This document shows, piece by piece, positions 5,520 through 64,000 of a stretch of DNA of 64,000 bases. Positions within the stretch are counted from its first letter, which is position 1. Every line of letters begins with the position of its first letter. Under the pieces are notes generated by a model that saw only the letters and a program-made list of their open reading frames with translations, was not told where the DNA came from and did no database searches. The stretch is taken from assembly GCA_016748015.1 (NCBI GenBank), contig JAAOMT010000328.1, positions 763,960-827,959 of the forward strand. Reading direction: 5' to 3'. Source of the stretch: Geosiphon pyriformis uo1 (Eukaryota > Fungi > Glomeromycota). Both the position numbers and the translations under genes were made by a program.

Positions 5520-5520
<1 letters not shown>

Positions 5521-5562
<42 letters not shown>
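5521..5562. repeat. (ATT)n microsatellite
   Basis: Perfect ATT run. Confidence 0.95.
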
Positions 5563-5564
<2 letters not shown>

Positions 5565-10624: not shown

Positions 10625-10799
10625 GTTTGATTGATGAAGTGATAGAATTTGAAATGTGAACAAGGTGAAATTAAACAAACCAATTCTATCCTATGAATCT
10701 TTTAAGAAATGATTTTGTTTTTGAATGGTATTTCAAAAGAGCAATAGAATAATTATAGCGTGTTTGATGACTGATTTCACGTGACTTTTTAAATAGATT

Positions 10800-38088: not shown

Positions 38089-39799
38089 CAGAATATACGA
38101 TGCAGAAGAGTGTCTCTTGTTAAAAGTTATAAAAACAAATGTCGCTACATGAAAGGATAATAGGCGAGCCTGATAAAATTTTTGTGATCTGTTGTGGAAA
38201 AATTAACAAAAAAAGTTTATTTTAAGCACGATTTTCAAAAATCAAAATTTCCAATCATGTGATTATAACAATTAACCTAAAAATACGTAAAAGTAGGAAC
38301 TAGAATCTTTGGCCAAAATATTTTTTTAAAGTAAGGTATTTTGTTCAATTCTTTACTTTTTGTTTTGCTAATTATATATTGAAGAATTATTAGATTATAA
38401 TTATAAATAAAGCATAATATATGTTGAAAAACTTTTTGAATATTTTTTAAATATTATTAATATATAAAAAACCATAAAAAAAATTAATAACTATAATTTT
38501 ATTTGAAATATATTAATAATTTGAAAATAAAATAAAAATGTTTTAAATTTTTGTAATTTTATTAATAATATCAAAAAATCTCAAAAATAAAATACTATTT
38601 ATATTTATTAATTTAAATAAATTTTAATAATTAATACTTATTCTACTTTATTTTTTATTAATTGAATTAATTTTCTTTTTGCATTTTAATACTAAAAATT
38701 AGCATTTTTTAAATTTTTAATTAATCATAATTTAAAAACAAAAAATTGAATATAATTATGCAAATTTTTTTTAATAATTGTTAAATATATTTAAGAAATT
38801 AAAACAATAATATTTTTTAAAGAATTTTAAAAATTGTAATTATTAATATATTTTTTGTGTTATAATTAATTTAATATACAATAATTAAATTGTATTTTTT
38901 TTACCATATTAATTTACAAAAATTTTTGTAAAAAGTTTTAAATTGATTTAATCTAAAAAAAATAATAAAACTTTTTTTTTGTATTTTTATGATTACAACC
39001 AAAATAAAAAGTAAAAAGTTGCAATTTCTTTATTTTTGAAGTATTTGGTAATATTTTTATTAATAAAATATTTACAACTTTTAAAACTGTTTAATAATAT
39101 TTTATAAAAGCACTTTTTTTAATAAAGTAATAATAAATTGGTTTTTTACTAATTTTAAAACATTATTTTTGTTTTTGGTTAAAAGTTTTTTCTTTTTTAA
39201 AGTTTTTTAAAAAAAATCATTTAAAATAGTCTTTGTTTTCTTTAAAAGTTTTAAAGTTTTTAATAAAAAATTAATAACTAAATTTTTTTACTATTTTTTT
39301 TACAGTTATTTAAATTATTAAAAAAGCCAAATTGGCCAAAAAACAATTTTTTTAAATTTTTGTTATATTAAATAACAATTTTTTTGAAGTGCTAAAAAGT
39401 TTTTTTCTAATTTTTTAATATTAGTTTTAATGTTTTAAAGCCAGTTTTTTTTTAATAAAAAATAAAGCTTTTGTTTTTTTTGGCTTTTTTATTGGTTTTA
39501 TATTATTTGTATTGATTATAATGCTTGGTTTTATTATAAGTATAAATAAAAATATTTTTTATTTATATTTATAATAAAATATATTAATTAATTTAAATTT
39601 AAATTAATTTTTAATTATATTACTTAATATATTAGTTTTAAAAACAAAATAATTTATATTTTTATATGTGTTTTTAATTTATTAATTTATTAATTAAATA
39701 GAAATTTAAATTATTTTTTTTGTTTTTTAGTAATATTATTTTTAATAGTACTTAAAAAACAATTATTAATTATTAAGAATTTTTTAAATAAATAAATTT

Positions 39800-40150
39800 T
39801 ATTTTAATGTTTTTTTTTAAAATTAATTTGATTTATGTTAAATTTGCTTTTTAGTTTATATATGATTTTATTACTGTAAAATCAGTTTTAAAAAACAATA
39901 TAAAACTGTTTTGTATAAAGTTTGTCTTTTAAGTTTCTTTAAATACTATTATTTAAATTAAACTTGTTAATTTTGTTTCTTTTTCTATTTTTAAAATTGC
40001 TAAATTTTTGTTATTGTTTTACAAAATATATTTAAGAGTATTTTTGTTATTAATCTTAAAAATATTTTTAACATTTTTGGTAAAATGTTTTAAATTTTAT
40101 TAAATTTTATTAATATTTAATAATATTTTATTGTTTATTTTAAATAATAC
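39800..40150 (+). mobile_element. AT-converted ghost of the ORF1-type sequence seen at 61.1-63.3 kb
   Basis: Aligns to the reverse complement of ~62160-62520 mostly by C->T/G->A, e.g. gtttcaaaagacaatgtgaagcttttctgtatggagtttg -> gttttaaaaaacaatataaaactgttttgtataaagtttg and tgctggcatttggcagtat -> tattaatatttaataatat. Confidence 0.8.
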
Positions 40151-40869
40151 TAATAATTGTTTATTAATATGTAATATTTGCTTAAAATATTAATTTTTAT
40201 AATTATAATATTTAGGTTTTTATAAGAACTAAAAATAACAATTCTATATTTTAATTATTTAAAATAAAAAATAAAAAAAATTTAATTACAAATTTAAAAA
40301 ACTAATTTGTTAAAACTATATAACTAAAAAACTTATTATAAAAAACAATAATTTTTTTAATTAATAAATAAAAATCTTAATATTGTTTTTAATTACCAAA
40401 ATTAATTAACAAATATAAACAGTTATAATTATATTAAAAAATTTAAAATAAACAATAATATATTATTAAATATTAACAAATTTTAATATAACTTAAAAAA
40501 AAAATTGATTACAAAAAATTGCAATTAACATATAATAATATATAATAATACACAATAATACATAATAATAATATTATTATTAAATAATATAAAATAACAT
40601 AAATAATAAATTATAGTTAATAATAAAATTACAAATTAATAAGCTTTTAAAAATTATTTTATAAAACAAAAAATATGTTAATAAATAAATAATTTTAGCT
40701 TAAAAAAAATTTAAAATTAAAATCTATTTTTTTATATATTTATTAATATTAATTAATTTATATATAATTTTTTACAAAAATTTTGTTTTTAAAAATTGGT
40801 TTTAATAATTTTTGTCAGTTTTAAAAAAGAGTATTAATTTTGCATATAGTTTAATTATTAAATATTATA

Positions 40870-41240
40870 ATAAAATTTAATTATGTTGTTATCAAAGATT
40901 TTTTTATTTTTTTCTTAATATTATTAATATTATTTTGCTGTTAATTTTATTGTTAATAAAAATTAATAAACTTTTAATAAGTTAATTTTCTTTTAAAGTA
41001 TTAAAAAATACTTTAAACTGTATATATTGTTAAATTTATAATAAAATAGCCAATTTTATGTCAATTACTTGAATAGTTATTTTATAGTAAAAATTAATTT
41101 TTTTACAAGAGAATTTTATTTGTAAGTTTTTTAAAATTATATGTAATTACTTTGTTATAAAAGTCAATTTTTTTACAGAAAATTTTGACTGTAAACTTCT
41201 CAAAAAAAAAAAAAAAAAAAACCAAAAAAAAAAAAAAAAA
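40870..41240 (+). mobile_element. AT-converted ghost of the LINE 3' UTR with poly(A) tail
   Basis: Matches ~49980-50293 (gttactttgctgtgaaagtcaactcttctacagaaatcttgtctgtagg -> attactttgttataaaagtcaattttttttacagaaaattttgactgtaaa); A-tail 41192-41240. Confidence 0.85.
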
Positions 41241-41873
41241 TGTATTAAGAAAGTTGTTTTGAATTCAGACCTAAAAATTATTAATAGTTACTAAAATTAA
41301 TAGCTAATTAATTTCAAATTATTAGTATAGAATAGTAAATTTTTTAAACAAGAATAATTAAGAATTTTTATGTTTTTTAAAACAAATTTTATTGTAATTA
41401 ATTTATAAAAAAAATAATTCTAACTAAAATATTTAATAAAAAATATAAATTTTAATGAAATTCTATTTTTTCGAAAAAAAAGCTCTTCTTTTATATAATT
41501 TGGTATAACATTATTCTATAATCTAATAATTTTTTTTTTCTAATTTCTTGATAAACTAAAAATATATTTTGTTAAACTACAAGTTATTTTTATAAACTAA
41601 AAATTATTTTAGTAAACTGTTGAATATTTTAATAAATTTTTAAATATTTTAACAAATTTTTAATATTAAATAATTCAGTATATTACATAATCTAATTATT
41701 GCAATTTGGTTTTATTTGTGTTTTGTATAAATTAAGTTATTAATTAAATAATATTTCAAATAATTTAAAAAGATAATAAGTAATAAATTAAAATAATAAT
41801 ATATATTAATTAATAATAAAAATTAAAAAACTAATTTTATGTCAAATAATATCTTAAATTTCGGCTAGTAATA
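41241..41873 (-). mobile_element. Decayed solo LTR related to the Gypsy LTR at 50352-50968
   Basis: Colinear similarity over the whole length (agctcttcttttat, ttattaattaaat, decayed 20-bp repeat array); begins TG, ends agtaata (from ggtaaca). Confidence 0.85.
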
Positions 41874-42159
41874 ATGTATATTTAAATATAAAACTAATAT
41901 AAATAAGTTTAAATTTATATATAATAACAATTTAATATTTTTTATTATAATTTGCCAATTATTTTATTAAATATAACTAAGATTTTTAGTATAAGTTTTA
42001 AGATATATATATATTGTTTATTTTATTTAAATTTTAATAATAATATAACTATTAAAATAAACTTGTAATATTATTTTAATTAGTTTAAATAATTGGTTAT
42101 ATATAAAAAATATATAAGTTATATTTAGTTTAAAATATTTAATTATTATATTATATTAT

Positions 42160-42825
42160 TATTATGAGTTGAAGTAACAAGCTAACAGATAGCAAGAGAA
42201 AACAAAATTGTAGGGTGATAGAAATAATCAAAAAGAATTCAACTTTAAAGAGTGAATTGAATAAGTATAAATTCAATGTATGAGATTAGTCTCATAAAAT
42301 ATCTCAGTTGCTATTCTTTTCAAAAAGATAATTGAAGAATCTGAAGATAGAAGGATAGTCTATACTGTCAACAAATGATCACACTTAGTATAATTCTATG
42401 CCTCATGTTGGCATTCTTAGAATTCAATATCAAGTATTAGATGTGCTTTTTAGTCATGTTTTATTCAATAATCTTCAAATGGTACACTTATACATTTTAA
42501 GAAAAAGGATAAGAATTAACCAATAAGTAATCTTTTATCCTAAGATGTTTGGATACTTGAAGATAAGGAAAGAAAAATTAGCAATAAGAGAATAATTGAA
42601 ATAAAAGTTGTTATTTTATTTATTCTTGATTATTTTAAATATGCTTTTCTACAACTAAGAGATTCATCACTTATATAGCTGTCAAAAGTAGTCAATAATC
42701 AGATTAATAGTCAAGTTATTGATCAAATTAATGATCACTATCTAAAAATAGAGTGGCTAATTTATATGATATCAATGGCTAAGACATATAATAATTAATA
42801 AGAAGTATAAGTTTCAATCATAATA
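42160..42825. mobile_element. Probable solo LTR of a second family
   Basis: ~666-bp GC-richer island bounded by inverted ends tattatgagttgaa..ttcaatcataata (TGTTATG..CATAACA after G->A/C->T), possible 4-bp TSD ttat, internal TATA-like ctatataag on the minus strand. Confidence 0.6.
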
Positions 42826-43383
42826 TTATATTATATAATAATTAAATCTTACTTAAATTAATAATAAAAAATATATTAAAACCAAATAAAATATATTTTT
42901 AAAAAATTAAAAAATTTTATTTAAAATTAAATATAATTTGTATATATTATTCTTAAAATTTTAATAATTGAAACCAATTATTTTTAATTATAATAATTAA
43001 AAAAATTTAGTAATTTGATTATTATAATAAAATAATTTAATATTATAATAATTTCTTTTAAAAAAAAAAATTTTATAATTAATTTTATAAAAAATTATTA
43101 ACTTACCAAAAAAACAATATTAAATTTTATTAATTTTAATTAAATAATATAAGTTAAATTAAATAAAATTAAATAATAATTAATATTATATATTATTATT
43201 AATATTTATTTTTAAAAAACTTTAATATCTTTTTTTTATTGATTTTATAAAGTATAATTCAATTATCAATGACTTCTCTCTTACTCCCAAAAATCCCAAT
43301 AAGTTATTTTTCTGAAAAAAAAGTTTTTGTTTTTTTCTTATTAGTATTATATTAATATTTCTTTAACTAATAACCCCTTTGTC

Positions 43384-45251
43384 ATGGATTCAAAGGCTGC
43401 TTCTAGTGGCAGCATGTCTAGTAAGAAGACTTTTAAGAGCGTGTTTCATGGTCCTGCCAATGGTTTCTTTTCACAAAAAAAGAAGACTTCTCTTGGTAAT
43501 GTTAAATACTCTGGTGATGAAAAGGATATTTCTTTGAAGTCTGGTTCTAGTGCTAGTGTATATTCCGATGTAGAAAGCCTTTCTGGTGATGATGAGGATG
43601 TTAGTATGTCTGGTGGTTTTAATGATTCTCTTTTGGATTCAGCTGTTAACACTCCCAAGGCTAAACGTGTGAATACTAGTGTGAATTTTGGTTCTCTTAT
43701 TGGTTCTTCTGACTTTGAGATAGATGAAAAAGTGAAGCCCTTTCTGCCCCCCCTTATGAAAAAAATTCCTTTGGATAAGATCTGGATCGATCCCAAAATT
43801 ATCAAAACTCCTATAGAGATGGCAGTTAAGAAATCTTTTGCCTTGGATATCAATCTTTCAGCTATTGAAAGCAAATCAGTGATGGCGAAAACTTATTTAA
43901 TCAGGAAGGTTTTTTCAAAGATCAATGGTTTTGGGGAGACCATTACCCTCTCAAAATTTGAAGGGATCATCTGATCGACATTTACATTTGAGGAGAGCAT
44001 GAAGAAAGCTGTGTCATTGGCCGAAGAAGAGAGGATTGTCATAAACAATGATGTGAGAAAACAAGGGTTTCGTTCAGATCAGGCTGTGGTAATCAAAGAA
44101 ATTTCCATGGATACACCAAAAGAAATAATCGTCATTGCAGTTTCTGAGTTTGGGCAAATTAAGTTGATCAAAATCCAGTTGGTTGGTATGTGGCAGAAGG
44201 CTGTGGTGGAATTCGCCAAATCAGGACAGGCAGAGCAATTGGCTTCAAAATGGTCCTTTTTAATTGAAAAAGACTCTGTACGTGTGGCAAAGGCCATGAG
44301 AGATTGCAATATCTGGGTCTCTAGAGATCATTTTAGGACGCTTCTGTTTACACTGCTGGTGGGAACAACAACGCATGACCTTAGTAATCTTCTGGATAAA
44401 ACTGGTGGCAGAACTTGCATTATTAATCGTTTATTGAACACTGGCAATAGAGTTTGCTGTGCTGTAGTTGGCTTCAAATTCGAGAATGATTTGAATTCCG
44501 CTTTTCTCACTGAGCCTGTTTTTGGTGGTGTTCGTCTTTCTTGGGCTAGGCTGGATTTGGTTCGATGTGAAAAATATGGACGTCTTGGACATTCGGCTTT
44601 AGAGTGTGATGCATCAGATATGTCGTCTTCTGATCTCTTGAATAATTTTAATAAAAGGCATGCTCCTAGTGTAGATCATCTCTAGTTGGCCAAGTTATAT
44701 GTAAAGAAAAATGTTCCTATATCCCACCCTGCTGCCTTTGGTGGCAAATTATGGGCCCAGATAGTCTCTTTTGCTTCCTTTTCTGGTGGCTCTCCTTCTG
44801 GTTTTGGTCTTGGTACTGGTTCCTCTCACCATACAACTCCAGATTTGGGTGGTGGTCCTCCTTTTTTTACACTTGCCGACTCTTCTTTGAATGCTTGCTT
44901 GGCATCTTTGAAATGTTCTCTCGAGTTGTTGACTAACCAAGTGTCTGATATTTTAAGGAAATTGAGTTTTGTTGAATTGGTGCCCCTCTTTTGGTTGGAT
45001 CTGTGTCTTTGGCCCCTAGTTTGGATTCTGATATGGCTCTGGATGGTGAATTGGCATCATTTGATCACCATTTTCCAAGTATTGATATGGGTGGTGGCTT
45101 CAATTCAAGTAGTTCGAAGGTTTTAACTACCAAGATAGGTGGTTTGAAGTCTAAAATGTTGGCTCTGGAGGCTTCAGTCAGTTCTGTTTTGGCAAGATTG
45201 GATTTTTTGTGTGCTGGTTTGGGTTCCTCTTTACTGCTTTCACCCCAATGA
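43384..45251 (+). pseudogene. LINE ORF1 (RRM-like regions, degenerate CCHC knuckle, coiled coil)
   Basis: In-frame stops at 43972 (TGA) and 44683 (TAG), frameshift near 44990; knuckle CEKYGRLGHSALEC. Confidence 0.85.
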
Positions 45252-48200
45252 GCAGTTTGGTCTGGAAATTTGCTACATGTAATATTCAGGACATGAACAT
45301 TCCTGTGAAGCAGGATGATATAGTTTGTTGGCATGTAAACTCGGGAAACATGGTTTTTTTTATTACTAAAACAAAATTAAGATCCTCTTCTGGGCCATGG
45401 ATAAAGGATAAATTTAATGGAGTGCAAATCTTTTCTTCAGGATTGGATAAAGGTTTTATGGGTGCTGAAGTTGCAATTATTATAAACATTTCTTTGGCTT
45501 GTCATGTATCTAAGATGGAGGAGATTCCTGGTCGGGTTGTTTCTGTTTGGCTCTTGTTTAAGAGCAAACTCTCGGTTACTGTTTTGGGGTTGTATGCTGG
45601 TGCCTCTTCTGGAGCTAGGTTTGGTCAGGCTTTTGAAGTTAACTTTCTTATTGCAAAGGCTGTCAACTCCAGCAATTTTGTTATCTTGGGTGGGGACTTT
45701 AATGAGAATGGATCTAGTAAAAGTGCTAGTTTCAAGTTTTTTTTGAGTTTGGGTTTGGTCAATTCATTTGTTGGTCATTATTTGGCTAATTCTCATATGT
45801 GGAGCAATTCGAGAGGGGTTGGAAAAACGATTGATTACATTTTTGTTGGTGGTAATTTGTCTTCTGCTGTTGCTAGTCATCAAGTTGTCTCTGTTTCAGA
45901 TTTCTTTGACACTGATCACAGGGCAGTTGTGGTTTTGGTCGGTTTGGATGGGCTTTTGAATGTACAGTTGAATAGTTTGCACAAGCAGACGAATAAAGAT
46001 TGTTGGAAGTTTAAAATCAAGAATACTGACTGTGCTGGATGGACTAAGTTTAAGGATCTCTCTTCAGCAAAACTCTTGTCTTTGGGTGAGGTGTTCTCTG
46101 GTGCTGAAATGCATGGTGATGTGGATGCTATGTGGGCAGTTTTGGTGGGGGCTGTGGTAGATTCTGCTGATGTGACATTTTTGAGACATTGGTTTAATGA
46201 ATTCAAGTGTTCAAGAAACAAACATTCTTTTAGGTTTTTTGGTCTAGAATTGTTGGTGGCCAAGATTGTCAAGAAATTTTGCTCAGGTGACTTACTGGGT
46301 ACTAATCGTCTTGTAAATAAATGGTCAACTCTGAATGATGCAAAGGCTTGTGCTTTCAAGGACTTGGTTGGCTCAGGTGTTAAATCTGATGTTGTTGTTA
46401 GGCATTTGTCATTGGTTTGCAGAGATTACAGGAGGTTGAAGATGTTTGAGTCAAGATTGGCTGAGGAAGCTTTGATTAGGAAGGCAATTGAGAAGCACAT
46501 AGATAATTTCTGTTTGGATAAAGGTAGTATGATTAGGAGTGTGTTGGAAAAGCCTTTTCGCAAGGTGGTGTTGAATTACTTGATAGTTGATAATGATCTA
46601 GTTTTGTTGCCTGAAGAGGTGAAGTCGAGCGTGGATAAGATAATGGAGAGATGGACAAAGAAATGCTCTGTGCAGTCAGAGCTTCCTGATCTTTGGGCTT
46701 GTCAGTACACACCTTTGAACCATGTTTGGGATGATGCCTTTTTGGGTGTTATGAGTGCAATCAGTATGAGCGAGTTACTTTCTGTTGTTGGTGGTCTGCC
46801 TGATGGCAAAGCTGCTGGTTTGTCTGGTGTTTCTAATGAGTTGTAAAAACATGGTGGTAAAATGGTTTTGGGGTGCCTGTTGGTGCTGTTTAATAAGTGT
46901 TTGTCTGTTGGAGTGGTGCCTGTTTTGTGGAAGAAAACTTGGGTGTCAATGATTCCTAAGCCTTACGATTGGGATGGAGTTCTTACAAACACTCAGCCCA
47001 TTGCTTTGATTGAGAGTGCCAGGAAGATTCTTTTCAAGGTTCTGTCTGATTGTATTTCAATGGCTTGTAGCAAGTTCAACATTCTTCAAGGTGACAATTT
47101 TTCGGTGCTGAAGGGTACATCCACACAATCTCTAGTGTTTGCTGTCGGTTCAGTGATTAAGGATACTATTGAGAAGAATAGGGAGTTATGGTTGGTCTTG
47201 CAAGATATGCAGAAAGCTTATGATTCAGTTGGATGGCATTATTTAAGAGCTAGTTTGCAGCATGTCAAGATGTGTGAGAGGTTCATAAGGTTTTTTGGTG
47301 GTATTTATGAGGATAGAGTTAATAGGGTAATGACTGACTTTGGTTTGTCTGGTGGTTATAAGGTGCATGATGGGCTGGATTAGGGTGAGGTCTTTTTGCT
47401 GCTTCTATAGAGAATTTTTTATGATCCACTTTTGTGTAAGGTTAAGAGACACAAACAATTGTGTGAGTACCAAATTAATACTAAGTTTGTTGCAAAGTCT
47501 GGCAGAATTGAGAGCAGTGATGGTTTGACATTATATTTTTTGGCTGGTGTATTTGTTGATGATACAATCTGGGTTGGAAATTGTTAGGCTTCTACTCAAT
47601 ATGCTCTGAACATTGCCAGTGAATTTTTTGTGATCAATGATATTTCTATCAACAGTGAGAAGACGATAGCTATTCCCATTAATCAGGGTGTTAAAGTTGC
47701 TTCACTGAGCATTTGTGGTCAGCCAATTTCTATTGCCAAAAAAGAGGAAGCACATCGGTATCTAGGTATTTTTCTGTCAACTGAGGGGCTCTCCAAGCCA
47801 AGTGTTGCCAAGGCTCATGTGGATGTGCATTTCTTTATCAATGTTGTGCTTAGGAAAGCTATTACTGACAAACAGTTCTCCTATCTGGTGTCGGCTATTT
47901 TATAGCCTATTGTTAGCTATTATATTCAGTTCAGTTTTGTCCCTTCTAATGTTTGTCACAAGTGGGATGTCTTGGTTAGAAAGGGTCTTAGGTTTAAGGC
48001 TTGTCTCCCCCATGATTTTCTTGATGCTGCTTTGCATCATCCCTCATTGTATGGCCTGAAGCCTTTTAAGCAAGTGCAGTCAGAGGGGAAGATTGCTGCT
48101 CTGATAATGTTCTCTAATCCCTTTGGTATTCTTGGGCGTTTGTTTAGACATAGGTTTTTGGATCTGCAGGTTCTTGGTTGGGCTCCTTTGGATTCTTTGC

Positions 48201-49933: not shown

Positions 49934-50351
49934 TGTTGTCTTGTCTGGCCTGAGTGGCTAGCCACATGTAGAAAGTGTGTGAGTTGCGTTGTTACTGGAG
50001 GTTTTTGGTCTCTTTTCTATAATGTTGTTGATACTTATTTGCTGTGAATTCACGTTTTCTGGATGTGGTTGAACCTCTAGTAACTGAATTTATCTTCAAA
50101 TTATCTCCTATAATTTGAACTGCTGGGCTTATAAGTGGAATGGCCAATTCTTTGCCAGTTACTTTATGTAGTTACATTGTAGTAAACGTCAACTCTTTCC
50201 CAGGAATTGCTTGTCTGGAAGCTTACTAAAATGTATAGTTACTTTGCTGTGAAAGTCAACTCTTCTACAGAAATCTTGTCTGTAGGCTACCCTAATGATT
50301 ATAATAAGAAAAGAAAAGAAAAATAAAAGAAATGTAAAAGAAATAGAATTT

Positions 50352-50968
50352 TGTCAAGGGAAACGTTTTCTATCCAGGCCTGGAGTCACTAACAGTTTAC
50401 TGAAATTGGTAGCTAATCAATTTTGAAATGTTAGTTGGGTTTTGGGGATTTTCCAAGTACAATAATTAAAGAATTTGGTTTTTCAAATTATTTGATATTT
50501 ATTTCTTTTTGTGTGTATAGGAACAGTTTTAAGAGATAAATCTAAAGTAAGATACATTTTCTCGAAGAGAAAAGCTCTTCTTTTATACAACTTGTCGTAA
50601 CACTATTCTATGAACTTGAACTTTGCTATTTTCTACAATTTTGCTGAACTAAAGATACATTTCGGCAAACTACAAATTATTTCTGCGAACTATTAGATAT
50701 TTCGGTGAACTATCAATTATTTCGGTGAATTTCTATAAATTTCGGCGAACTTTTGAATGTTACATAGTTCAGGGTATTGCATGATTGATCATCGCAATTA
50801 GGTTACATTTGTGTTGTGTACAATTTGGGTTATTAATTAAATGATAATTTCGGATATTCTTTGCTAATGTAATAAGTGATAATTTGAAACAATAATATAT
50901 GCTAATTAATGATAGGAATTATGAGATAGTTTTATGCTAAATGATATCTCTAATTTCGTCTGGTAACA
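50352..50968 (-). repeat. 3' LTR (617 bp)
   Basis: tgtcaaggg..ggtaaca; 50439-50968 matches 59227-59756. Confidence 0.92.
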
Positions 50969-51656: not shown

Positions 51657-51770
51657 TATAAGCACTTGAAAAAATAAAAATTTATTTTTGGTTTATGGGT
51701 TTTTATGTTATTTTTGTTTTGTTTTTGTGAGATTGTTCTAAATTATAAGAGAATAACTAGTAAAATTAAA

Positions 51771-54700: not shown

Positions 54701-57100
54701 GAGAAATCGGGAACTATTTGGGGTAATTCTTGTTGAAATATATTACTGTGAATAACTCCAATTTTTAAATTATTTAATAAAATTATGAGGTAATTATTGG
54801 GGTTGTAAAAAGTAACTCGGACTTTCTTTGTTCCTTCTGGAATATAAATGTTTGGGATTGAAATATTATGTTCCAAGCAGACTTGTTCATTGGACTCAAA
54901 AATTTATTGTGTGGTTGTTGACTTTGGGCAGGTGTAGATTTCCGGATGTTCTCCAAAGGGTGAGATAGTAATCAGTTGTGGAAGTCTGAGAATCTGGTGG
55001 GATTCGTTCTGTGTGTTAAGAGCTATATTAACTGGAACTGTGAATCGTCCAGTTGAACCAAAACCTTGGGTTTCTCTATTGTTTTTTCCTAATTGTTTTC
55101 TTTGATTGACTAGTTGCAAACCCAAAATGTTGATTAAGAGTAGGTAAATAGCTTGGGCAATTTTTTCAGCATGTTCAATCTTGAATGGTTTGTCAGTTTC
55201 ATTTTGAAGCATCACTGTTATGTCTCCAGTATATTCAGCATCNNNNNNNNNNNNNNNNNNNNGTCTGAGAATCTGGTGGGATTCGTTCTGTGTGTTAAGA
55301 GCTATATTAACTGGAACTGTGAATCGTCCAGTTGAACCAAAACCTTGGGTTTCTCTATTGTTTTTTCCTAATTGTTTTCTTTGATTGACTAGTTGCAAAC
55401 CCAAAATGTTGATTAAGAGTAGGTAAATAGCTTGGGCAATTTTTTCAGCATGTTCAATCTTGAATGGTTTGTCAGTTTCATTTTGAAGCATCACTGTTAT
55501 GTCTCCAGTATATTCAGCATCAATTATTCCTCCTCTGACATTGATTCCTTTGCTTGCCAGAGAGGACCGGGAGGCGATTTGAACCATTGCTCCTGATGGG
55601 ATTTTGAGTGCAATTTTGAGGTTGATTTTTGTAAGAGATTTGGGTTTGAGAACAAGAGTATCCTTGCCTGGATATTTTAGGTCATATCCAGCATCAATTT
55701 CGTGTGCTTTTTCAGGTTTTATTCCTTGTCTGTTGTTGTTAAGGTATTTAAGTTGTAAAACAGACTGATTTTTGATAAGGTAGATGGGTGTTGTTTCAAT
55801 TTCTTCCGTTTCTTCAGGTTCTCTGAATTCAATTTGATTCTCATCATTTTCACTGGGCAAGAGGATACTAAGAGCATAATATTCAGGACACCATTGTTTA
55901 TCGCAAGGCATAATGCATTCTTCACATAGCCTAATGTTCATTTGCTCTAATTGTTGAATTTGAGCTTCTTGGATTGGGTAGGTGTGACTTGCAATTTGGT
56001 AGTAGACTTCTACTTCATCTTCGTAATCGAATCCAGCTAATTTTATAGTGTATTCAATGTATTCTGCTTCTTTTATTTGATGAACATCTTCTTTGGTAAT
56101 TCCATTAATTAATGTCATTGCTAAGTCAAAAATCATCTCGGCATCATGAGAGTAGTGATAAAGTTTGTTGAGAGCACTATTGTATACTGCATTAAAGGGT
56201 GTTCCTCTTTTTACTTTTTCTGAAATTGATAAAGCATATTGGCAGGTCTGATCGCAGATGCCTCCTCTCATTGCTACATCAATTCAATTGCATTCTTTTG
56301 GTAGCATCTCTTCACAAGTCAAACAAGGAGTGTTGTCCCATTTTTCGCTCCTTTTTATTAGATGGCCCCATTGCTCTCTGTGGCAAGCCTTGCAGTAATA
56401 ACAAGTATGATTCTCATATTCTTCTTCAGGTGAAATGCAAGCTCCCATTGATGATAGTTTCTTGTGACAGTCCTTACATTTAAGGGGAATATAGGGGCGT
56501 TGTTTCTTTGGTTCGGGTTTTGAGTAAAGTATATTCTATCCAGAGGTTTCGGGTTTAGTGTGTGGGGTGAAATGTTCTTGTTCTGTTTCATTGGCCCAGT
56601 TGGATACTGATCCAAGAGCCATGAATGTTTCGATTATTGGTTTTTTTTCTTCCGGTTCAAATTCAAAAGCTGGGGCTTTTTCAGAGCATTTGTTGAATGT
56701 ACCACAAATGGCAGATACCTGGGCGTGTTGTCCTTGGTAGGAGATTGTTAACTCTTGTGTTTCCCAATTCAGATTAGCATTGGCTTCTTGAAGCCAATCA
56801 TTTCCGATGAGAGCTTGATACTGGGGTGCATTTATTACAAGAACTTTGACTGAAATGGTGATTCCATCAAGAGTGAATAGAAAATTGTCAATTTCTCCTA
56901 CTGGGGTCTTTTTCATGCCATCAGCAGTGATGATTACTGTTTGAGCTGGTCAGTCGACATTTCTTTTCAACTGTTGCATTAACTAGTAGGTAATAATGCT
57001 TCTGGCGGATCCACTGTCTAGGATTAAGCGAATTGGCTTTCCTTCTACTTCAGCTTCTGTGTACATTGCAGTGATGGTTTTTTGCTCATTAGCCACTGTA
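51771..57100 (-). pseudogene. Gypsy pol remnants (protease, dUTPase, RT, RNase H, integrase)
   Basis: PR LILDSGS; RT SPWASPVVLVKKK, LDLESGYWQ, MPFGLCNAPATFQ, YLND (from YLDD); RH TDTS..YSATELE; INT H..HFG..CDSC, GIDL, SDQGTHF, ERFNRTL; multiple stops. Confidence 0.92.
55325..55720 (-). CDS. dUTPase domain within pol
   Basis: Trimeric dUTPase motifs I-V: AGYDL, RSSLA, GIIDAEYTG, IAQ, RETQGFGSTG. Confidence 0.92.
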
Positions 57101-57419
57101 TTGCTAAGCAAGAATGGTGATTCATTTGTTTCAAATTCAAAAGGAAAGATATCAGAGAGATTGGCGTTTTCAGCAATTTGGGCTAGTGGAATAGTAGTGT
57201 GGTTATGAGAAGGGTTTCGTTGTTGTTGTGCTGTAGCTTTACCTTCTGAAAGTGCAGTATAGTAAAAATTCTGTTCTTCCGGCATTGTTAAATAACTGGG
57301 TTGAGTGTGGTAATGGTTGGGTCTTGTTTGAGTGGTATTTCGGGGAACCAATTGGTTGTTCGAACTGATTCTACTGTTGTTTACTTGGTATCGGTTTTGT
57401 GGTGTAATTTAATTTTGTG

Positions 57420-58923
57420 TAATCAGTCTTCAAGCAGGTACTTGATAATGTTGGGTGGGTGGTTGTTGGTATTGCTGTTGGATTGGTTGTGGGGCAGGCT
57501 GATAATAGTTATTTTGGTATTGGGGTCTTGGTGGATAGTAAGCTGGTGGTGATGGTTGATAATAAGATTGCTGTGGTGAAGAATAACGTTGATTACTCCT
57601 ATTTTGTTGGTCTCGTTGCAGCTTTCTGCAATCTCTTTTCCAGTGGCCAGAGATTCCACAGTAATGGCAATTCTGGGGCTGGTTATTGGAAAGTAGTACA
57701 AAGTTATTTTGATTTCGTCTTTGGGGTGGTTGATATCTTTGGGGTTGTTGTTATTGTTGGTTGGTAAAATAGTTTTCGACTTTCTTTGTGAGTTGGTCAA
57801 TTTTTTCCTCAGCTGCTGAGCTGGTTTCTCCAATTGCCAAATTTACAAGTTTTGTTTAATTGGTTTTTTCCATGGCCATTTCATATCTTTTCGCATGCTG
57901 TATGGCAGAGTTTAAATCTTCTGGTGCGTGTAGGCAAACCTTTTTAATTAGTTTATCTTTTAGACCAGCAATAAATTGATCCAAGATTTGAGCATCAGAA
58001 TAATAATTGTTTGTCTCGAGTTGGCGAATCCGTCTGAGAAGTTTGTTGAATTTCTCAATATAAGTCATAATAGATTTGGAGGGTTCTTGTTTGATATTTC
58101 GAAAACGATTGCGAAGAGTGATGGAGGTATTATTGTCGGTGAACTGTTCAAGGAAAGCTGCTTTGAAAGCATTCCAATCATTGAATGGGGTGGCAAAGTT
58201 TTCAAACCATTCTCCTGCTGTTCCTTTGAGAAAGTAGGGTATTGTTCTTAACATTCTGGCAGCATTCCATCCATTTGCATCTCCAGCTTTAGTAACTTGG
58301 TTGAGCCATTCTTGGGGACTGGTCTCAATATCTTCTCCATTGAATTCAGGGATTTTTGCAATGTATGTTGTCATTTTGTCTTCTTCATTTTCACTGTCTA
58401 TTGATTCTTCTTCAGTTATTTCAGAGTTGTTTTCTTTGTTTGCTGCTGTTTCAGAGTGTTCACTTTGATTTTCAGCTAGAAAATCAAGGAGATTGGAACT
58501 AGTTTGAAGGGGTTCTTGTTGTCTGGTAGAACTTCTGAGTGATGTAAAATCTTTTGGTCTTGCAAATCGATTCAAGGGTGAATTAGGTGTTTGTGCTTGT
58601 GCAAGTGAAGCTAGAAAAGGTGTGATAGTAAGTGGAAGTTTTAAACTGGTTCTCTGTTCAGGTTTTTGTAAATGTTTGGCAGTTGTTTTCGGTAGTATTG
58701 GAGTATTTGGGGTGGTTCTTGAATATTGCTTTAATTTGTTTTTGCCTTTGTTGCTTGTTTCTGTTTCCAATTCAAAATCAATAGTGTATTGAGACTGCAC
58801 TGGATATGTTTCTTTACAGTACTTGATAATGTTAAAATTAAGTTTGTGAAAGTAAGTGGCAAGTGTTTCACTATTAAGGTCTTCAGTTCCCAACTGTGAA
58901 TAGTGTGCTAAATTATTGTAAAG
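57420..58923 (-). pseudogene. Gypsy gag (capsid plus CCHC nucleocapsid knuckle)
   Basis: IPEFNG..QEWL..ANGW..FLKGTAGEWF..QFIAGL; knuckle CHYCGISGHWKRDC at ~57626-57670; 5' end lost in the N gap. Confidence 0.88.
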
Positions 58924-59226
58924 NNNNNNNNNNNNNNNNNNNNNNNNNNNNNNNNNNNNNNNNNNNNNNNNNNNNNNNNNNNNNNNNNNNNNNNNNNNNN
59001 NNNNNNNNNNNNNNNNNNNNNNNNNNNNNNNNNNNNNNNNNNNNNNNNNNNNNNNNNNNNNNNNNNNNNNNNNNNNNNNNNNNNNNNNNNNNNNNNNNNN
59101 NNNNNNNNNNNNNNNNNNNNNNNNNNNNNNNNNNNNNNNNNNNNNNNNNNNNNNNNNNNNNNNNNNNNNNNNNNNNNNNNNNNNNNNNNNNNNNNNNNNN
59201 NNNNNNNNNNNNNNNNNNNNNNNNNN

Positions 59227-59756
59227 GTTTTGGGGATTTTCCAAGTACAATAATTAAAGAATTTGGTTTTTCAAATTATTTGATATTTATTTCTTTTTGT
59301 GTGTATAGGAACGGTTTTAAGAGATAAATCTAAAGTAAGATACATTTTCTCGAAGAGAGAAGCTCTTCTTTTATACAACTTGTCATAACACTATTCTATG
59401 AACTTAAACTTTGCTATTTTCTACAATTTTGCTGAACTAAAGATATATTTCAGTGAACTACAAGTTATTTCTGTGAACTATTAGATATTTCGGTGAACTA
59501 TCAATTATTTCGGTGAATTTCTATAAATTTCGGCAAACTTTTGAATGTTACATAGTTCGGGGTATTGCATGATTGATCATCACAATTAGGTTATATTTGT
59601 GTTGTGTACAATTTGGGTTATTAATTAAATGATAATTTCAGACATTCTTTGCTAATGTAATAAGTGATAATTTGAAACAATAATATATGCTAATTAATGA
59701 TAGGAATTATGAGATAGTTTCATGCTAAATAATATCTCTAATTTCATTTGGAAACA
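59227..59756 (-). repeat. 5' LTR (partly hidden by the N gap 58924-59226)
   Basis: 530-bp ungapped match to 50439-50968. Confidence 0.92.
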
Positions 59757-60127
59757 GCATTTAGTTTGAGTCTCTTAGTTTGGCTCTATGTACTAGATAA
59801 CGATTGGACTATACTTGTTAAATGTGTTAATAATAATTATCAATTATAAATTAAAATATAAAAACTTAAAATAATTATTATTTATGTTTTTACTATATAT
59901 AACTAGTTATTTAATTTAGTAAAAACCAAATTAAATTGAATTTATAGAAAAAAACCTATTTTAAACAAATATTTTTTACATAAAAACAACTAATAAACTA
60001 CTGTTTTTATTAAATTATTTAATTATATAACAGTTTTATCTATATAAAACTTGATATTAAATAGTTAAAGTTTTTATAAAATTATTATTTAAACATATAT
60101 TTTATATTAATAATAATATTTATAATA

Positions 60128-60159
<32 letters not shown>

Positions 60160-60162
<3 letters not shown>

Positions 60163-60770
60163 ATTAAACTTTAAATTAAGCTTTGTAATTTTTAAATTTA
60201 AATTTGCCAATACTATTTAATTTAGTTTAAAAACCAAAATACAAATCTCTTATTTTTATAATTAAAACAAAAAAAACATTAAATAATTTAATTACCAATT
60301 AAATCAAAACACCAAAAAACTTAACAATAAATTTAATTAATAAAACCAAATTAATTATATTAAAATTTAAAAAAACCAAACAAAAACCAATTATAAAATT
60401 AACAACAATAACAACAAAAAAAGCAGCTAGTAAAACAACAATATAAATTATAAAAGCAAAAACCTTAATATAAAACTTAATACTAATAAAAAAAGAATTA
60501 AAAATTTTAAATCTAATAGTAAACTTAAAAAAAACTTAAAAAAAAGATAATAATATTAAATAATCTATAACCAAATAATTTAAACTTTAATACTTAAAAC
60601 AATATTAATATTTAAGAGTTTTTTATTAAATACAATACTTTTTTAAAATATTAATTTTGATAATAATAGTATTTAAATTTTTTTTAAGACCAAAAATAAT
60701 ATATAAAAATTATAATTATTATATAAAATTAAGAAATAGAAAATAAAATTATTATATAATTGGTTAATTT
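60160..60770 (-). mobile_element. AT-converted ghost of the ORF1-only element
   Basis: caatctatggccagatgg..gacacctaaagcagtgccggca..ggagtttcccaccagatacagca (~61794-61870) -> taatctataaccaaataa..aatacttaaaacaatattaata..agagttttttattaaatacaata (~60561-60637). Confidence 0.85.
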
Positions 60771-61035
60771 AAATTTTAATAATATTAAAATAATTAAAAT
60801 TGTTTAAAAAATAGTTTTTTGATAAGTTTGTTTTTGTAATTTCAAAATAATTTAGCTTAAATTAAATTTGTGTTTAATTATATATAAAAAATACATGAAT
60901 TATATTTAATTTAAAACTTATTTAATAATTATATTATATTAAATAGTAGTTAAACTTTATATATTAATATAATAATAATAATAATAATAATAATAGATTT
61001 TTATTGTATATTTAAAATAAATAAATAAATATATT

Positions 61036-63310
61036 TTTTTTTTTTTTTTTAACGAGCAAGACCCAAATACCATCTAAACTATGATATCACAGAAAGGATT
61101 ACATTATAGGTGTAAATCACGCATTTTCTACATGTGATCAAACACTCGGCCCAATCAAGGACTCACTATGCTGAATCAAAAGTAGGTGGAAATAATCTCA
61201 ACCCACAAATTCTCTCAATGATACCATTCAGATTCTTAGAGTCAAAAATAAACTCACTAAGAAACAATCTAGTAGACTCAATATTGTCTCTGGTTTCAGC
61301 ACCAGACATACGCCACAAAGCAATAACATGCTCAATAGTGTCCTCACTTAAAAAAGAAGGCTTAACAGCCAGCATACCATCATAATTCATATCACCAAAG
61401 TCAACCTCAAATCTAAGACAAGTAATGTCCTTGGAGACCCCAACCAAGAGATTAGAAAAATTGTTAGCAGCACTCTTCATAGAAATAAGATCCTTCTTGA
61501 CCTGAACAGCCTTAGTAACATTATCATCAAGAAGACGAGACACCAAAGCGACCAAAAAACCAACAGGCTCAACAATAGACTTAACCAGAGCAGCCAAATC
61601 TGAAATCTGCTTTTCCAAAGAGTCCAATCTAGAACCAACAGCAGGATCAACAACAGAAGCAGCCAAAGGAGCCACCAAAGGAGGAAACTCAGAAAGACCA
61701 GAAGGAGCAGCAGTCTTGGCATATGAAGCAGAACCCACAAAATGAGACTTGAAAACCTTGAGAACCTTAGGAGTGGGGGGTGGGGAAATCTTGCAATCTA
61801 TGGCCAGATGGCCCATTTCTTGACACCTAAAGCAGTGCCGGCAGCCAGGAGTTTCCCACCAGATACAGCATTTCCTTAGAGTACCAGTTTTGACTACAGC
61901 AGAATTCAAATCACCTTGAGAGCCAAATGTAACCAAAGCAAACCGGAAACGATGACCAGAATCAGGAGAACGAGGGATGAAACATGTACGACCACCAATC
62001 TGAGAAATCATATCACTGATTTTAAAGGCAGTACAACCAGGGGAAAGGTTGACCAATTTGGTCTTAAACTTATCACGAGACAAAATAGTCTCATTTTGAT
62101 TTATCAGAGGGAGGATTCTAACACTATCCTTGCCCACCAAAACTGACCAAAGCTTCAAGGCAGACACAGCAGAGTCCAACTTTTCAAAATAAACCACCAC
62201 ATACTGCCAAATGCCAGCAGGCTTCAGCACAATACGAGCGACACTACTAAACACACTGAGAGCCAACTTGATGTCAGCAGCAGACACACCCAAAGGTACA
62301 TCACGCAGCACAACAGCAGCAGAAGAAGAACCAAATTCAGAAACCACCAAAGACTAGGCAATTTTGAGAGTGGCCAAACGAACAGAGCTTGTAAGCTCAA
62401 CCAGAAACACAGCTTTCAAAGACTATTGAGAAGCAAACTCCATACAGAAAAGCTTCACATTGTCTTTTGAAACAAATTTGGCACCCAAAAAACCATGCAC
62501 AAACTGAAAAACAGTCTTAACATGAGCCAATTTGGTCTTGAAAGTAGCACCAGGCACCAGAGTGGAGGCCACCCACTTAGCAAATCTTTGACGACTAGTA
62601 ATAGTTTCCCAAGCACCACCAAAAGTAGCACCAGAAACTAGAGAAGGAGATAAATCAGTTTCCATTTGATCAGCCCAGTTCCCAAGAACAGATGACCCAA
62701 CAGAAGGAGATTGTTTTGCTTCTAAAACCGGTGATGATCTGCCGAAAAACACCACATTTGGCAATACAGCCAGTGGTTGATCTTGGCCCATCTTAGATAA
62801 TGTGCTGGATGATGCTACTGAGATCTCATCTAGGATCTCATTGGGAACCACAAAGAGATTTGGTGTGACAATAGCAGAGGCAAATGACTGCCCCCACTTT
62901 TCTGAACTTTTGGTCTTTTTGACCATTTTTTTTGAAGAAGTGGTGCCAGAAGCACCAGGTGTTGAGTCTATAAGGGAAAAGACCAGCTTATTTACTGGTC
63001 TATTATTAAAAACTTTTGGGCTCTTAGTCGGGGTGGAGGCAACACTGGGACTAATCCAAGTGTGTCTCTTTAAAGGAACTTTGACTGGTAAAAAACCAGC
63101 CAAAGATGAGGAAATTGATTCAGTGGCTACCAAAGGCAGCTTTTCACGATTACTGGGTAAGGGGAAGGCTTCTAAAACGTTTTGCCTAGTTGCTTCTACA
63201 ACAGAAAGAGCTCCTCTGGTTGAAATTTTATTAGATACCTTAGGACAGATATCAGGTGCAGCCTTTTTACTCTTAGCTCTGGTTGTGGTCATAAAATTAA
63301 GGAGACAAAG
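61036..63310 (-). mobile_element. ORF1-only, poly(A)-tailed non-autonomous retroelement (HAL1-like)
   Basis: One ~708-codon frame 63292->61166 broken by two TAG stops (62423, ~62354); similar to the LINE ORF1 (VVLRDVPLG, WSVLVGKDSVR, GGRTCFIPR, CFRCQEMGHLAIDC, coiled coil); ~115-nt 3' UTR then poly(A); no ORF2. Confidence 0.85.
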
Positions 63311-64000
63311 AATATAAATATATAATAATTAAAAAATATTTATTATTAAATAATTTATATATATGTATTGTTTTTTATATATTTTAAATTATATTAAATT
63401 AATAATAATATATAAAATAATATATAAAATAAGTTGTTAAATATTTTATTTATGTTTTTAAATTTATTTACAACATTATAAAATTATTATATGTTTTAAA
63501 AATTTGTAAAAAAATAATAATTTAAAACATATATACAATTTGATAAAAATTGTATACAATATTTTTTAAAAATAATAATAATAATAAAACAATTCAAAGA
63601 ATTAAATCTTAATTTTTTTTTAACTTTAATAAACAAAACATAAAAATATTTTTAAATTTATAAAACCAAGTATTTAAAAAATTAGAAATAATAATTATGT
63701 TTATTATTTTGTTAAAATAACATATTAAAAACAAAAATTTATTTGTTTAAATTTTAAAAACACAAAAACTGAATTAGTTAAAATAAATTTTATTAATATA
63801 ACTTTAATATAACAATTATTTTTAAAAAGTTTATTTCTATTTTAGAAATTTTAATTATATGTTTAAACAAAAATCAAAAATGTAAAAAGTAAGTTTATAA
63901 ATGACAAATAAAAATTAATAAAACTAAAATATAAACTTATATGTAAATAATTATTAAAAATTATATAAATTAGAAAAAATAAGTTAAATAATAATAATAA

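Follow-up and report, generated by a model that had tools for sequence, protein, structure and literature searches.

In RIP, as described in Neurospora and other Pezizomycotina, repeats undergo C:G to T:A transitions on both strands in a CpA context, and AT-rich isochores with sharp edges lie alongside normal genes. Homology-triggered RIP needs roughly 80% identity, and its relics retain a GC content much higher than the 8-13% of the tracts described here. For Gigaspora margarita and Mucoromycotina, RIP signatures are reported as undetected; in a kingdom-wide screen, only ascomycetes showed RIP-like signatures (PMC12543289). In Zymoseptoria tritici, Dim2-dependent mitotic C>T mutation in transposons raises the AT content of repeats without sex, with >98% of Dim2-linked mutations at CpA and CpG spared (PMC8016269). 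Methylation-driven CpG decay, in vertebrates, basidiomycetes and Rhizophagus irregularis (mCG on transposons, PMC8647823), depletes CpG in transposons and keeps it in genes. In APOBEC3 hypermutation of retroelements, which prefers TC and CC, cDNA editing gives sense-strand G>A only.

We analysed a 64,000-nucleotide stretch of Geosiphon pyriformis DNA (the window). GC segmentation gave a bimodal GC distribution and delimited tracts of ~10% GC, termed AT deserts, which span 8-13% GC (Table 1). In a 219-kb sample, 19% was desert and overall GC was 30.0%, in agreement with the published genome GC of 29.25%. The prediction held that these deserts are ghost transposons, and named four tracts. Matched against the window transposons, the best ungapped purine/pyrimidine HSPs reached 137 in desert 38251-42300 (at most 41 in 10 dinucleotide shuffles) and 134 in desert 59751-61100 (at most 36 in its own 10), confirming matches far above chance. 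The tracts at 39.8-40.15 and 60.2-60.8 kb were mapped as ghosts of the ORF1-only element at 61031-63311, the source family of three ghosts, and that at 41.24-41.87 kb as a ghost of the LTR. The remaining tract (40.9-41.2 kb) had been assigned to the LINE 3' UTR, but belongs to the same full-length LTR ghost, which aligned over LTR positions 1-979 and matched 50129-50966 by BLAST with 68% identity (E 3e-64). The shared 3' tail at 41956-42158 matched 3' tails in L002, L004, L005 and L006, and also window positions 49829-49990. Purine/pyrimidine matching identified no source element for D2, D4 or D6; the composition of D2 is the same as that of the other deserts. At the D3 edge the GC shift is completed within 100-200 bp. 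Young elements later inserted into these desert graveyards, and GC therefore changes abruptly where an element ends.

Table 1. Deserts, ghost copies, lightly mutated elements and assembly gaps in the window (C/G ts, transitions at C/G sites; A/T tv, transversions at A/T sites)
Feature	Start	End	Strand	Details
AT desert D2	10701	12250		GC 13%; flanked by host genes, outside the finding
AT desert D3	38251	42300		GC 11%; stacked ghost transposon copies adjoining Myb gene
Heavy ghost, ORF1-only element	38971	40148	+	Reference 2-1133; C/G ts 69.5%; A/T tv.116; 3.7 gaps/100 bp; GC.11
Heavy ghost, ORF1-only element	40149	40573	-	Reference 991-1468; inverted, abuts preceding ghost; C/G ts.779; A/T tv.106; GC.08
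Ghost, one complete 979-bp Ty3 LTR	40887	41873	-	Collinear with 49990-50968; C/G ts.617; A/T tv.087; 3.3 gaps/100 bp
Ghost, 3' tail common to LINE and ORF1-only element	41956	42158	+	Purine/pyrimidine HSPs 95-120
AT desert D4	42701	43350		GC 11%; weak purine/pyrimidine HSPs only (<=59)
LINE-like element, lightly mutated	43400	49989	+	APE and RNase H domains (Pfam); ORFs broken; CpG o/e 0.15-0.4
Ty3/gypsy element, lightly mutated	49990	59756	-	gag, protease region, dUTPase, integrase (Pfam)
Assembly gap	55243	55262		Exact 259-bp duplicate either side: 54984-55242 = 55263-55521 (self-BLAST 100%)
Assembly gap	58924	59226		Conceals at least 449 bp of 5' LTR, and leader
AT desert D5	59757	61030		GC 11%; starts after final ~80 bp of LINE tail
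Heavy ghost, ORF1-only element	60302	60773	-	Reference 1308-1762; C/G ts.708; A/T tv.103; GC.12
ORF1-only (HAL1-like) non-LTR element, lightly mutated	61031	63311	-	2.28 kb; RRM and CCHC domains (Pfam); poly-A tail
AT desert D6	63312	64000		GC 8%; extends past window end

The lightly mutated Ty3/gypsy element has TG..CA termini, a target-site duplication (GCGT/GCAT) and LTRs at 49990-50968 and 59227-59756, the second partly within a gap; the LTR length of 979 bp was set by copies in L003 and L005. The two LTRs are 96% identical, with 20 transitions and 1 transversion between them. Since they belong to one element, the process must work in place after insertion. Among 19 polarised changes, 16 were C>T or G>A, 2 were A>G and 1 was T>A. 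The ORF1-only element shares 89-93.6% identity with copies in L001-L007. Compared with a majority-of-8 reference, in which sites mutated in at least half of the copies are mis-polarised, it carries 59 C>T/G>A changes, 12 A>G/T>C changes and 6 transversions, and per-site rates across young copies were.05-.13 for C/G transitions,.003-.017 for A/T transitions and 0-.009 for transversions. C>T and G>A accounted for about 85-95% of all young-copy changes (69/73 in the L003 copy). The process targets integrated double-stranded DNA, acting on both strands alike, with similar C>T and G>A counts in each young copy, and irrespective of codon position (.081,.079 and.083). It is fastest at CpG, mutated ~3-4 times as often as other contexts (NCG.21-.27), and then affects all other contexts in the order CpC > CpA ~ CpT; as a secondary preference, cytosines that follow a pyrimidine are hit roughly twice as often.

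This RIP-like footprint, a C-to-T-dominated decay, is present in the deserts and under way in young copies. It occurs outside Dikarya, as anticipated, in a lineage (Glomeromycotina) from which none had been reported. The direction of change in ghosts was established from alignments scored at source A/T sites only, which are blind to the fate of C and G. In these alignments source C was found as T 184, A 45, C 73 and G 7 times, and source G as A 204, T 56, G 62 and C 12 times, while A>G and T>C were ~2% each. Conversion was nearly even across 3' contexts (CpA.73, CpC.74, CpG.78, CpT.75) and graded by 5' base (TpC.86, CpC.77, GpC.66, ApC.65), which bears out the claim that every context is hit on both strands; the example strings offered for it were located at 62201-62219 and 40108-40126.

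The original prediction also described few indels, and implied that transversions and indels would not scale with transitions. However, transversions rose from ~0.3% in light copies to 9-15% in ghosts (10-12% at A/T sites), and gap openings from ~0 to 2-4 per 100 bp, so that the scarcity of indels had been overstated. The longest ungapped blocks in ghost alignments were 129-198 bp, and the values for ghost 38971-40148 were unchanged when restricted to ungapped blocks of at least 40 bp. These transversion and gap frequencies indicate that the ghosts are old rather than burst-mutated. Since transversions and indels climb with transitions, near-saturation is explained by long accumulation, and a hypermutation burst is unproven. 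The expected gradient of conversion has both its extremes in the window (light copies 5-9%, heavy 58-79%), but intermediates (52-56%) were found only on other contigs; the complete series covers two element families and eight contigs. Among the intermediates, the copy at L004 21672-22121 is 52% converted, but its A/T transversions amount to just 1.7% and its gaps to 0.5 per 100 bp, whereas two further copies at this conversion level have 8% A/T transversions. The C>T rate therefore varies several-fold between loci, which would accommodate episodic bursts.

We favour, with moderate confidence, cytosine deamination directed at transposons and building up with time, probably via CG and non-CG methylation. 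The deserts are old copies of the ORF1-only element, the Ty3 LTR and the LINE tail that have come to the equilibrium of a transposon-confined, C-to-T-dominated mutation process. With u/v of ~.08/.012 the predicted equilibrium is ~13% GC at most, in line with the 8-13% of the deserts. The agent would be dense methylation of transposon chromatin at CG and non-CG cytosines; the 5-methylcytosine would then deaminate, and changes would build up over long, mostly mitotic growth rather than in a homology-triggered premeiotic burst. As in methylation-driven CpG decay, CpG is depleted in transposons and transitions fastest, and a copy almost never carries changes on both strands of the same CpG (2 observed, 11.8 expected), which is what would be seen if the fast class depended on CpG status itself. 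CpG decay alone could not yield 10% GC, because ~85% of young-copy C>T events are at non-CpG sites and 60-79% of all cytosines in ghosts are converted. Counting against a methylation origin, CHG sites (.054) are not favoured over CHH (.078). The Dim2 process of Z. tritici is the closest mechanistic analogue of this explanation, being likewise transposon-restricted and C>T-dominated, although in Geosiphon CpG is fastest and CpA among the slowest. LC-MS put methylation at 32-50% of cytosines in the related R. irregularis. Transposons of that species are CG-methylated (PMC8647823), and the AMF clade is stated to carry DNMT1, DNMT2, DNMT5, DIM-2 and RID (PMC8298701). The broad original proposal, either a cytosine mutator directed at repeats or methylation in all contexts, is consistent with the data.

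It is unlikely that the footprint reflects a true RIP-like defence, in which a RID/Masc1- or DIM-2-type enzyme would sense duplicated DNA and deaminate it in rounds, possibly premeiotic, with other mutations building up between rare rounds. Every target is a multi-copy element and young-copy changes are nearly all C>T and G>A; however, CpG and CpC are preferred, and a CpA bias sought in young-copy C>T contexts was absent. Runs tests on young copies found no same-strand runs (z -1.7 to +0.9). The deserts are positive by classical RIP indices (TpA/ApT 1.05-1.15 and (CpA+TpG)/(ApC+GpT).69-.97, versus.71 and 1.35 in host DNA) and GC is bimodal, both in favour of RIP, but leakage past desert edges was absent beyond ~200 bp. 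Conversion reaches 70-79%, well beyond the identity limit for homology recognition, and transversions and indels increase together with transitions, although the copy at L004 21672-22121 combines half-conversion with little other decay. RID and DIM-2 are stated in the literature to be present in the AMF clade, whereas the kingdom-wide screen places RIP-like signatures in ascomycetes only, and none were detected in Gigaspora. The predicted likeness to RIP holds for the C>T/G>A footprint on repeats, but not for CpA preference or same-strand runs. RIP in the strict sense is not shown, and on these data the idea of a hidden premeiotic or sexual stage is entirely speculative.

Neutral ageing under a mutation spectrum strongly AT-biased across the whole genome, in which dead transposons would drift to ~10% GC while selection or GC-biased gene conversion kept genes, introns and spacers at 25-40% GC, appears improbable. 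Such ageing accords with the scaling of transversions and indels with transitions, and with the nesting of young elements within old deserts, as age-ordered insertion predicts. Given time, the young-copy spectrum would also lead to about the ghost state observed. However, host DNA has a GC of ~37% and a CpG o/e of ~0.9, in keeping with the normal GC and CpG originally noted in neighbouring genes, whereas CpG o/e in transposons is 0.15-0.4. The fastest mutation class, at least, is therefore specific to transposons. The non-CpG component is probably transposon-specific too, as judged from composition rather than measured host mutation rates: host introns, spacers and fourfold sites have 20-42% GC (fourfold sites alone 27-42%), and only 0.1% of 50-bp windows across 35 kb of host DNA are at <=14% GC, versus 75-83% of those in deserts. 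Single-copy intergenic DNA had been considered as a place where the same decay might appear, but single-copy non-coding DNA was never at desert composition. In addition, C/G-to-A/T transitions exceed the reverse by at least ~7-fold, an excess that would be unusual for unmethylated DNA, judging by yeast mutation-accumulation spectra.

The 5' pyrimidine preference raises the prospect of an AID/APOBEC-like DNA deaminase acting on transposon DNA, for example on single strands exposed during repeat replication or transcription, which we regard as very improbable. Young-copy rates were.145 at TCC and CCC,.094 at TCA,.040 at ACA,.036 at GCA and.025 at ACT, and TpC was also the most converted class in ghosts. 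Neither DIM-2 nor DNMT1 is known for such a preference, which counts against the methylation reading, and a single-strand deaminase would account for it no less well. In transposon ORFs, fourfold sites show a strong strand skew, which hints at strand-specific deamination in replicating lineages. Retroelement targets and a TC/CC preference recall APOBEC3, but the strand-symmetric, post-integration changes exclude cDNA editing as the main source, and CpG is the fastest class whatever the 5' base, so that methylation would be needed as well. UV-type dipyrimidine damage left unrepaired in silent chromatin, conceivable for Geosiphon at the illuminated soil surface and matching the C>T enrichment at TC and CC sites, can hardly be the cause, since tandem CC>TT changes showed no excess (21 observed, 22.9 expected), ACC was mutated more than ACT and CpG dominance was independent of an adjoining pyrimidine.

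None of the ghost alignments crosses either assembly gap. The gap at 58924-59226 conceals part of an LTR because the match restarts at LTR position 450 (base 59227). The gap at 55243-55262 resembles a contig overlap left unmerged; it lengthens the Ty3 pol ORF by 279 bp, in frame, and the dUTPase domain match falls in two stretches.

GC content in 200-bp windows peaked mainly at 35% and again at 5-15%, a bimodality for which the original prediction had proposed a test. That prediction read the AT-rich stretches (deserts, here of ~10% GC) as old transposon copies (ghosts) with C and G mostly turned to T and A. GC segmentation gave six stretches below 20% GC; a seventh, at 58.8-59.35 kb, was discarded as merely a run of Ns. 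Ungapped purine/pyrimidine comparison with the window's own transposons returned HSP scores of up to 137 for the desert at 38251-42300 and up to 134 for that at 59751-61100, against maxima of 41 and 36 in ten dinucleotide shuffles per desert. This bears out the identification of these two deserts as ghost transposons. The desert at 42701-43350 gave weak purine/pyrimidine matches only, and 5351-5800, 10701-12250, 38251-38970 and 63312-64000 gave no match above shuffles to the window or to seven further 22-kb Geosiphon loci (L001-L007) carrying copies of the ORF1-only element. Two of these deserts, 10701-12250 (13% GC) and 5351-5800 (18% GC), lie in host DNA dense in genes, where they separate tubulin from the adjacent genes.

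Features of the window, with the ghosts recovered in its deserts
Feature	Position	Strand	Details
Stretch below 20% GC	5351-5800		GC segmentation
Stretch below 20% GC	10701-12250		GC segmentation
Stretch below 20% GC	38251-42300		GC segmentation
Stretch below 20% GC	42701-43350		GC segmentation
Stretch below 20% GC	59751-61100		GC segmentation
Stretch below 20% GC	63251-64000		GC segmentation
LINE-like element	~43.4-49.99 kb	+	Lightly damaged, between deserts
Ty3/gypsy element with dUTPase	49990-59756	-	Lightly damaged, between deserts; termini TG..CA; target-site duplication GCGT/GCAT
ORF1-only (HAL1-like) non-LTR element, 2.28 kb	61031-63311	-	Lightly damaged, between deserts; RRM and CCHC domains, poly-A tail
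ORF1-only element ghost	38971-40148		Gapped transition-tolerant alignment
ORF1-only element ghost	40149-40573		Inverted, abutting the preceding ghost; same method
ORF1-only element ghost	60302-60773		Gapped transition-tolerant alignment
LTR ghost, single, complete	40887-41873		Matches 49990-50968; gapped transition-tolerant alignment
Ghost of LINE/ORF1 3' tail	41956-42158		Purine/pyrimidine HSPs
Myb protein, 714 aa	35944-38088	-	Seven Myb repeats

The ghosts were assigned to the window's retroelements, and the example strings cited in the prediction were located where it had placed them. One assignment required correction: the supposed ghost of a LINE 3' UTR is the first half of the Ty3 LTR, the full 979-bp extent of which (49990-50968) was established from copies in L003 and L005. 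The two ORF1 ghosts meeting at 40148/40149 both cover positions 991-1133 of the reference and form an old palindromic arrangement. Transition-tolerant scoring favours transitions, and we realigned the ghosts with a matrix that scores source A/T only and is blind at source C/G. These realignments scored 85-423, and shuffles at most 58. Under them, source C was found as T 184 times, A 45, C 73 and G 7, and source G as A 204 times, T 56, G 62 and C 12, with A>G and T>C at ~2% each; the predicted conversion on both strands thus held under A/T-only alignment. Every context had been hit, again as proposed: conversion was flat with respect to the 3' neighbour (CpA.73, CpC.74, CpG.78, CpT.75). A preference for a 5' pyrimidine was kept (TpC.86, CpC.77, GpC.66, ApC.65).

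The process was also read from younger sequence, in eight light ORF1-element copies (the class with the fewest C/G sites carrying transitions; window plus the seven 22-kb loci, GCA_016748015.1) compared with the majority base as a stand-in for the ancestor. Per-site transitions in these copies were.05-.13 at C/G and.003-.017 at A/T, and transversions 0-.009. C>T and G>A together made up ~85-95% of changes (69 of 73 in the L003 copy) and were alike in number in every light copy, i.e. on both strands. Rates by codon position were.081,.079 and.083, an indifference indicating that the changes are neutral and post-insertion. Consistent with this, the LTR pair of the window's Ty3 element, identical at insertion, now shows 21 differences (20 transitions and one transversion), of which 16 of the 19 polarised by two outgroup LTRs were C>T or G>A, two A>G and one T>A. 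The process therefore acts on integrated DNA, on both strands. The Ty3 target-site duplication itself reads GCGT and GCAT at 49986-49989 and 59757-59760, so that even these 4 bp have gained a G>A transition, at a CpG, after the element inserted.

By 3' neighbour, young copies were converted most at CpG (.237), followed by CpC (.104), CpA (.063) and CpT (.059). Trinucleotide rates were.21-.27 for NCG,.145 for both TCC and CCC,.094 for TCA,.040 for ACA,.036 for GCA and.025 for ACT, and CHG (.054) had no advantage over CHH (.078). Both cytosines of one CpG were converted in the same copy twice, versus 11.8 times expected; such rarity is a prediction of a CpG-dependent (methylation) class.

Copies drawn from eight contigs and two families formed a series. 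Light copies had 5-13% of C/G converted, 0-0.9% A/T transversions, 0-0.8 gap openings per 100 bp and 26-43% GC; the corresponding values were 52-56%, 1.7-8%, 0.5-2.2 and 21-22% in intermediate copies, and 58-79%, 6-15%, 1.9-4.1 and 5-15% in heavy copies. Transversions and indels rise with conversion, against the few indels described in the prediction. A/T-site transversions were still 9.5-12% in ungapped blocks of at least 40 bp in the window ghosts, so that noise in the alignments is excluded. The ghosts are thus far older than light copies, and their state is roughly that of the young-copy spectrum given time: a forward rate of ~.08 and a reverse rate of at most.012 in young copies predict an equilibrium of at most ~13% GC, and the deserts measured 8-13%. 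Old copies accumulate at this equilibrium and young elements insert into them, which explains why GC is bimodal and why it steps sharply where elements end. One copy (L004, 21672-22121) had 52% conversion with A/T transversions of merely 1.7%, indicating that the C>T rate differs several-fold between loci; episodic bursts of C>T are possible.

Host genes in the window (including tubulin, COX15, a class I tRNA synthetase, a GTF3C1-like protein and a seven-repeat Myb protein) had ~37% GC and a CpG o/e of ~0.9, so that the normal composition claimed for neighbouring genes was found. Host exons (tubulin, COX15 and others) were scanned singly, as separate exons. CpG o/e was 0.15-0.4 in the three retroelements and ~0.22 in the ORF1-only family reference, and the CpG mutation class is clearly transposon-specific. 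Host fourfold sites had 27-42% GC, and over ~35 kb of host DNA, introns and spacers included, GC in 50-bp windows had a first percentile of.18-.20. Desert edges were sharp within 100-200 bp, with no leakage or gradient into neighbouring genes past ~200 bp. Composition, as opposed to measured rate, suggests that the non-CpG class is transposon-specific too. Across 219 kb sampled, 19% was desert and overall GC was 30.0%, close to that of the published Geosiphon genome (129 Mb, 64% repeats, 29.25% GC; PMC9453076), so the desert compartment is probably genome-wide.

The best fit to these data is a mechanism in which transposons would be methylated at cytosines in CG and non-CG contexts by a chromatin- or repeat-targeted system, and deamination of the methylated cytosines would build up over time. 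As in the 5mC decay of methylated transposons, Geosiphon CpG is depleted in transposons and spared in genes, and transitions run fastest at CpG, for only as long as the CpG is intact. In the related Rhizophagus irregularis, 32-50% of cytosines were methylated by LC-MS (PMC8298701) versus mCG at only 13.8% of genomic cytosines (PMC8647823), which suggests non-CG methylation there. In Zymoseptoria, a Dim2-dependent mitotic process causes C>T in transposons as seen here, but at CpA (PMC8016269), unlike in Geosiphon. DNMT1, DNMT2, DNMT5, DIM-2 and RID are reported from the AMF clade (PMC8298701), and the report of RID there also speaks for RIP in the strict sense, which is possible.

Of the RIP-like system originally proposed, the dominance of C:G to T:A transitions in repeated DNA stood, as did the RIP indices, which are purely compositional: deserts gave TpA/ApT of 1.05-1.15 and (CpA+TpG)/(ApC+GpT) of.69-.97, against cut-offs of >0.89 and <1.03 and host values of.71 and 1.35. 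The context rule is a different one, however, with no strong preference for CpA (TpG). Same-strand runs of C>T or G>A were absent from the eight light copies (runs-test z -1.69 to +0.92), which argues against single-round tracts, in a test where many superimposed rounds could wipe out such runs. On the trigger by duplication, all targets are multi-copy, but conversion proceeds to 60-79%, at which point copies are only ~65-70% identical to any relative; this would be far past the copy identity needed for homology recognition in RIP. A true repeat-triggered cytosine mutator of Geosiphon, and perhaps of the Archaeosporales, using RID/DIM-2-type enzymes with a CpG plus YpC (5' pyrimidine) rule in place of CpA, seems to us improbable, if worth keeping in view.

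Two lesser rivals are a deaminase with a YC preference, which the 5' pyrimidine bias would fit, and, weaker than this, AT-biased ageing of the whole genome; single-copy host DNA differed from the deserts in composition, as predicted, with only 0.1% of 50-bp windows at or below 14% GC versus 75-83% in deserts. APOBEC-type editing of cDNA acts before integration and leaves G>A on the sense strand, an asymmetry that Geosiphon copies lack; strand-symmetric counts and post-insertion LTR differences exclude it as the main source. UV damage was rejected, as tandem CC>TT showed no excess in young copies (21 observed vs 22.9 +/- 4.0 expected), and so was a sequencing or assembly artefact, the pattern being seen on eight contigs, in contiguous sequence with normal flanks.

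The observation is thus confirmed with corrections, and its interpretation partly supported. What is seen is a variant on known processes of transposon decay and RIP-like mutation, in an unexpected lineage: the source lies outside Dikarya, as stated, Geosiphon belonging to the Glomeromycotina (Archaeosporales). RIP signatures were reported as undetected in Gigaspora margarita and in Mucoromycotina, AMF and relatives have been described as without RIP, and a kingdom-wide screen in 2025 found RIP-like signatures unique to ascomycetes (PMC12543289). The OcculterCut survey covered no early-diverging fungi, and in literature other than the Geosiphon genome paper we found no account, for Geosiphon or any other AMF, of AT deserts or of C>T decay in all contexts. 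In this Glomeromycotina genome, transposons eroded to ~10% GC make up about one fifth of the DNA sampled, the erosion being caused by a transposon-confined, C-to-T dominated process acting in all contexts, which accounts for a genome of 29% GC although genes have ~37%. Since ghosts evade ordinary similarity searches, estimates of repeat content and of transposon age landscapes in genomes of this kind are probably too low. The context signature (CpG, then YpC) is measurable and lends itself to direct comparison with methylomes and, across early-diverging fungi, with the complement of RID, DIM-2 and DNMT5. If the mutator reading were true, a RIP-like defence would predate Dikarya or have arisen independently, would have converted about one fifth of the genome to 10%-GC DNA, and might be the trace of a sexual or parasexual stage so far hidden; a sexual stage is speculation on these data.

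For the ORF1 protein, more than 200 paralogues were found, the listed matches all being from Geosiphon pyriformis (G9A89 locus tags). The public Geosiphon annotation counts more than 200 ORF1-only copies as genes for a 'hypothetical protein', which inflates the gene number, and in these models a predicted intron spans the frame break. The last ~140 bp of the element (61031-63311; ~9976-12260 in L001-L007) are common to the LINE 3' tail. Fourfold sites were strongly strand-skewed in the transposon ORFs at 45209-49537 (+), 61166-63292 (-) and 54904-58923 (-), with sense-strand T of.48-.69 and A of.06-.23 in the LINE and ORF1-only elements and G of.03-.04 in Ty3; host genes had no such skew. This suggests strand-specific deamination or editing in replicating lineages, apart from the symmetric post-insertion decay. 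The dUTPase domain of the Ty3/gypsy pol (window 54904-56271 (-); L003 3746-4780; L005 1462-2085) is notable in a genome where cytosine deamination (uracil/thymine) weighs heavily on transposons.

Two assembly gaps, both outside every analysis of ghosts and mutation, affect the Ty3 element. The two sides of the 20-N gap at 55243-55262 carry identical sequence over 259 bp (54984-55242 and 55263-55521), indicating an unmerged contig overlap; gap and one duplicate copy make a 279-bp artefact of 93 spurious codons, in frame in the pol/dUTPase ORF, which is why the dUTPase domain was matched twice. At the gap at 58924-59226, between gag and the 5' LTR, the LTR match restarts at position 450 of 979 (base 59227), so that no less than 449 bp of the LTR are missing, together with the leader, and the true gap is probably larger than its 303 Ns. 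The Myb protein had no homologue at E <= 1e-10 in the searched length range except the window's own 700-aa model. An inverted repeat of ~84-95% identity (473-652 and 5265-5421), its arms separated by ~4.7 kb, borders the desert at 5351-5800 and may be a small mobile element.
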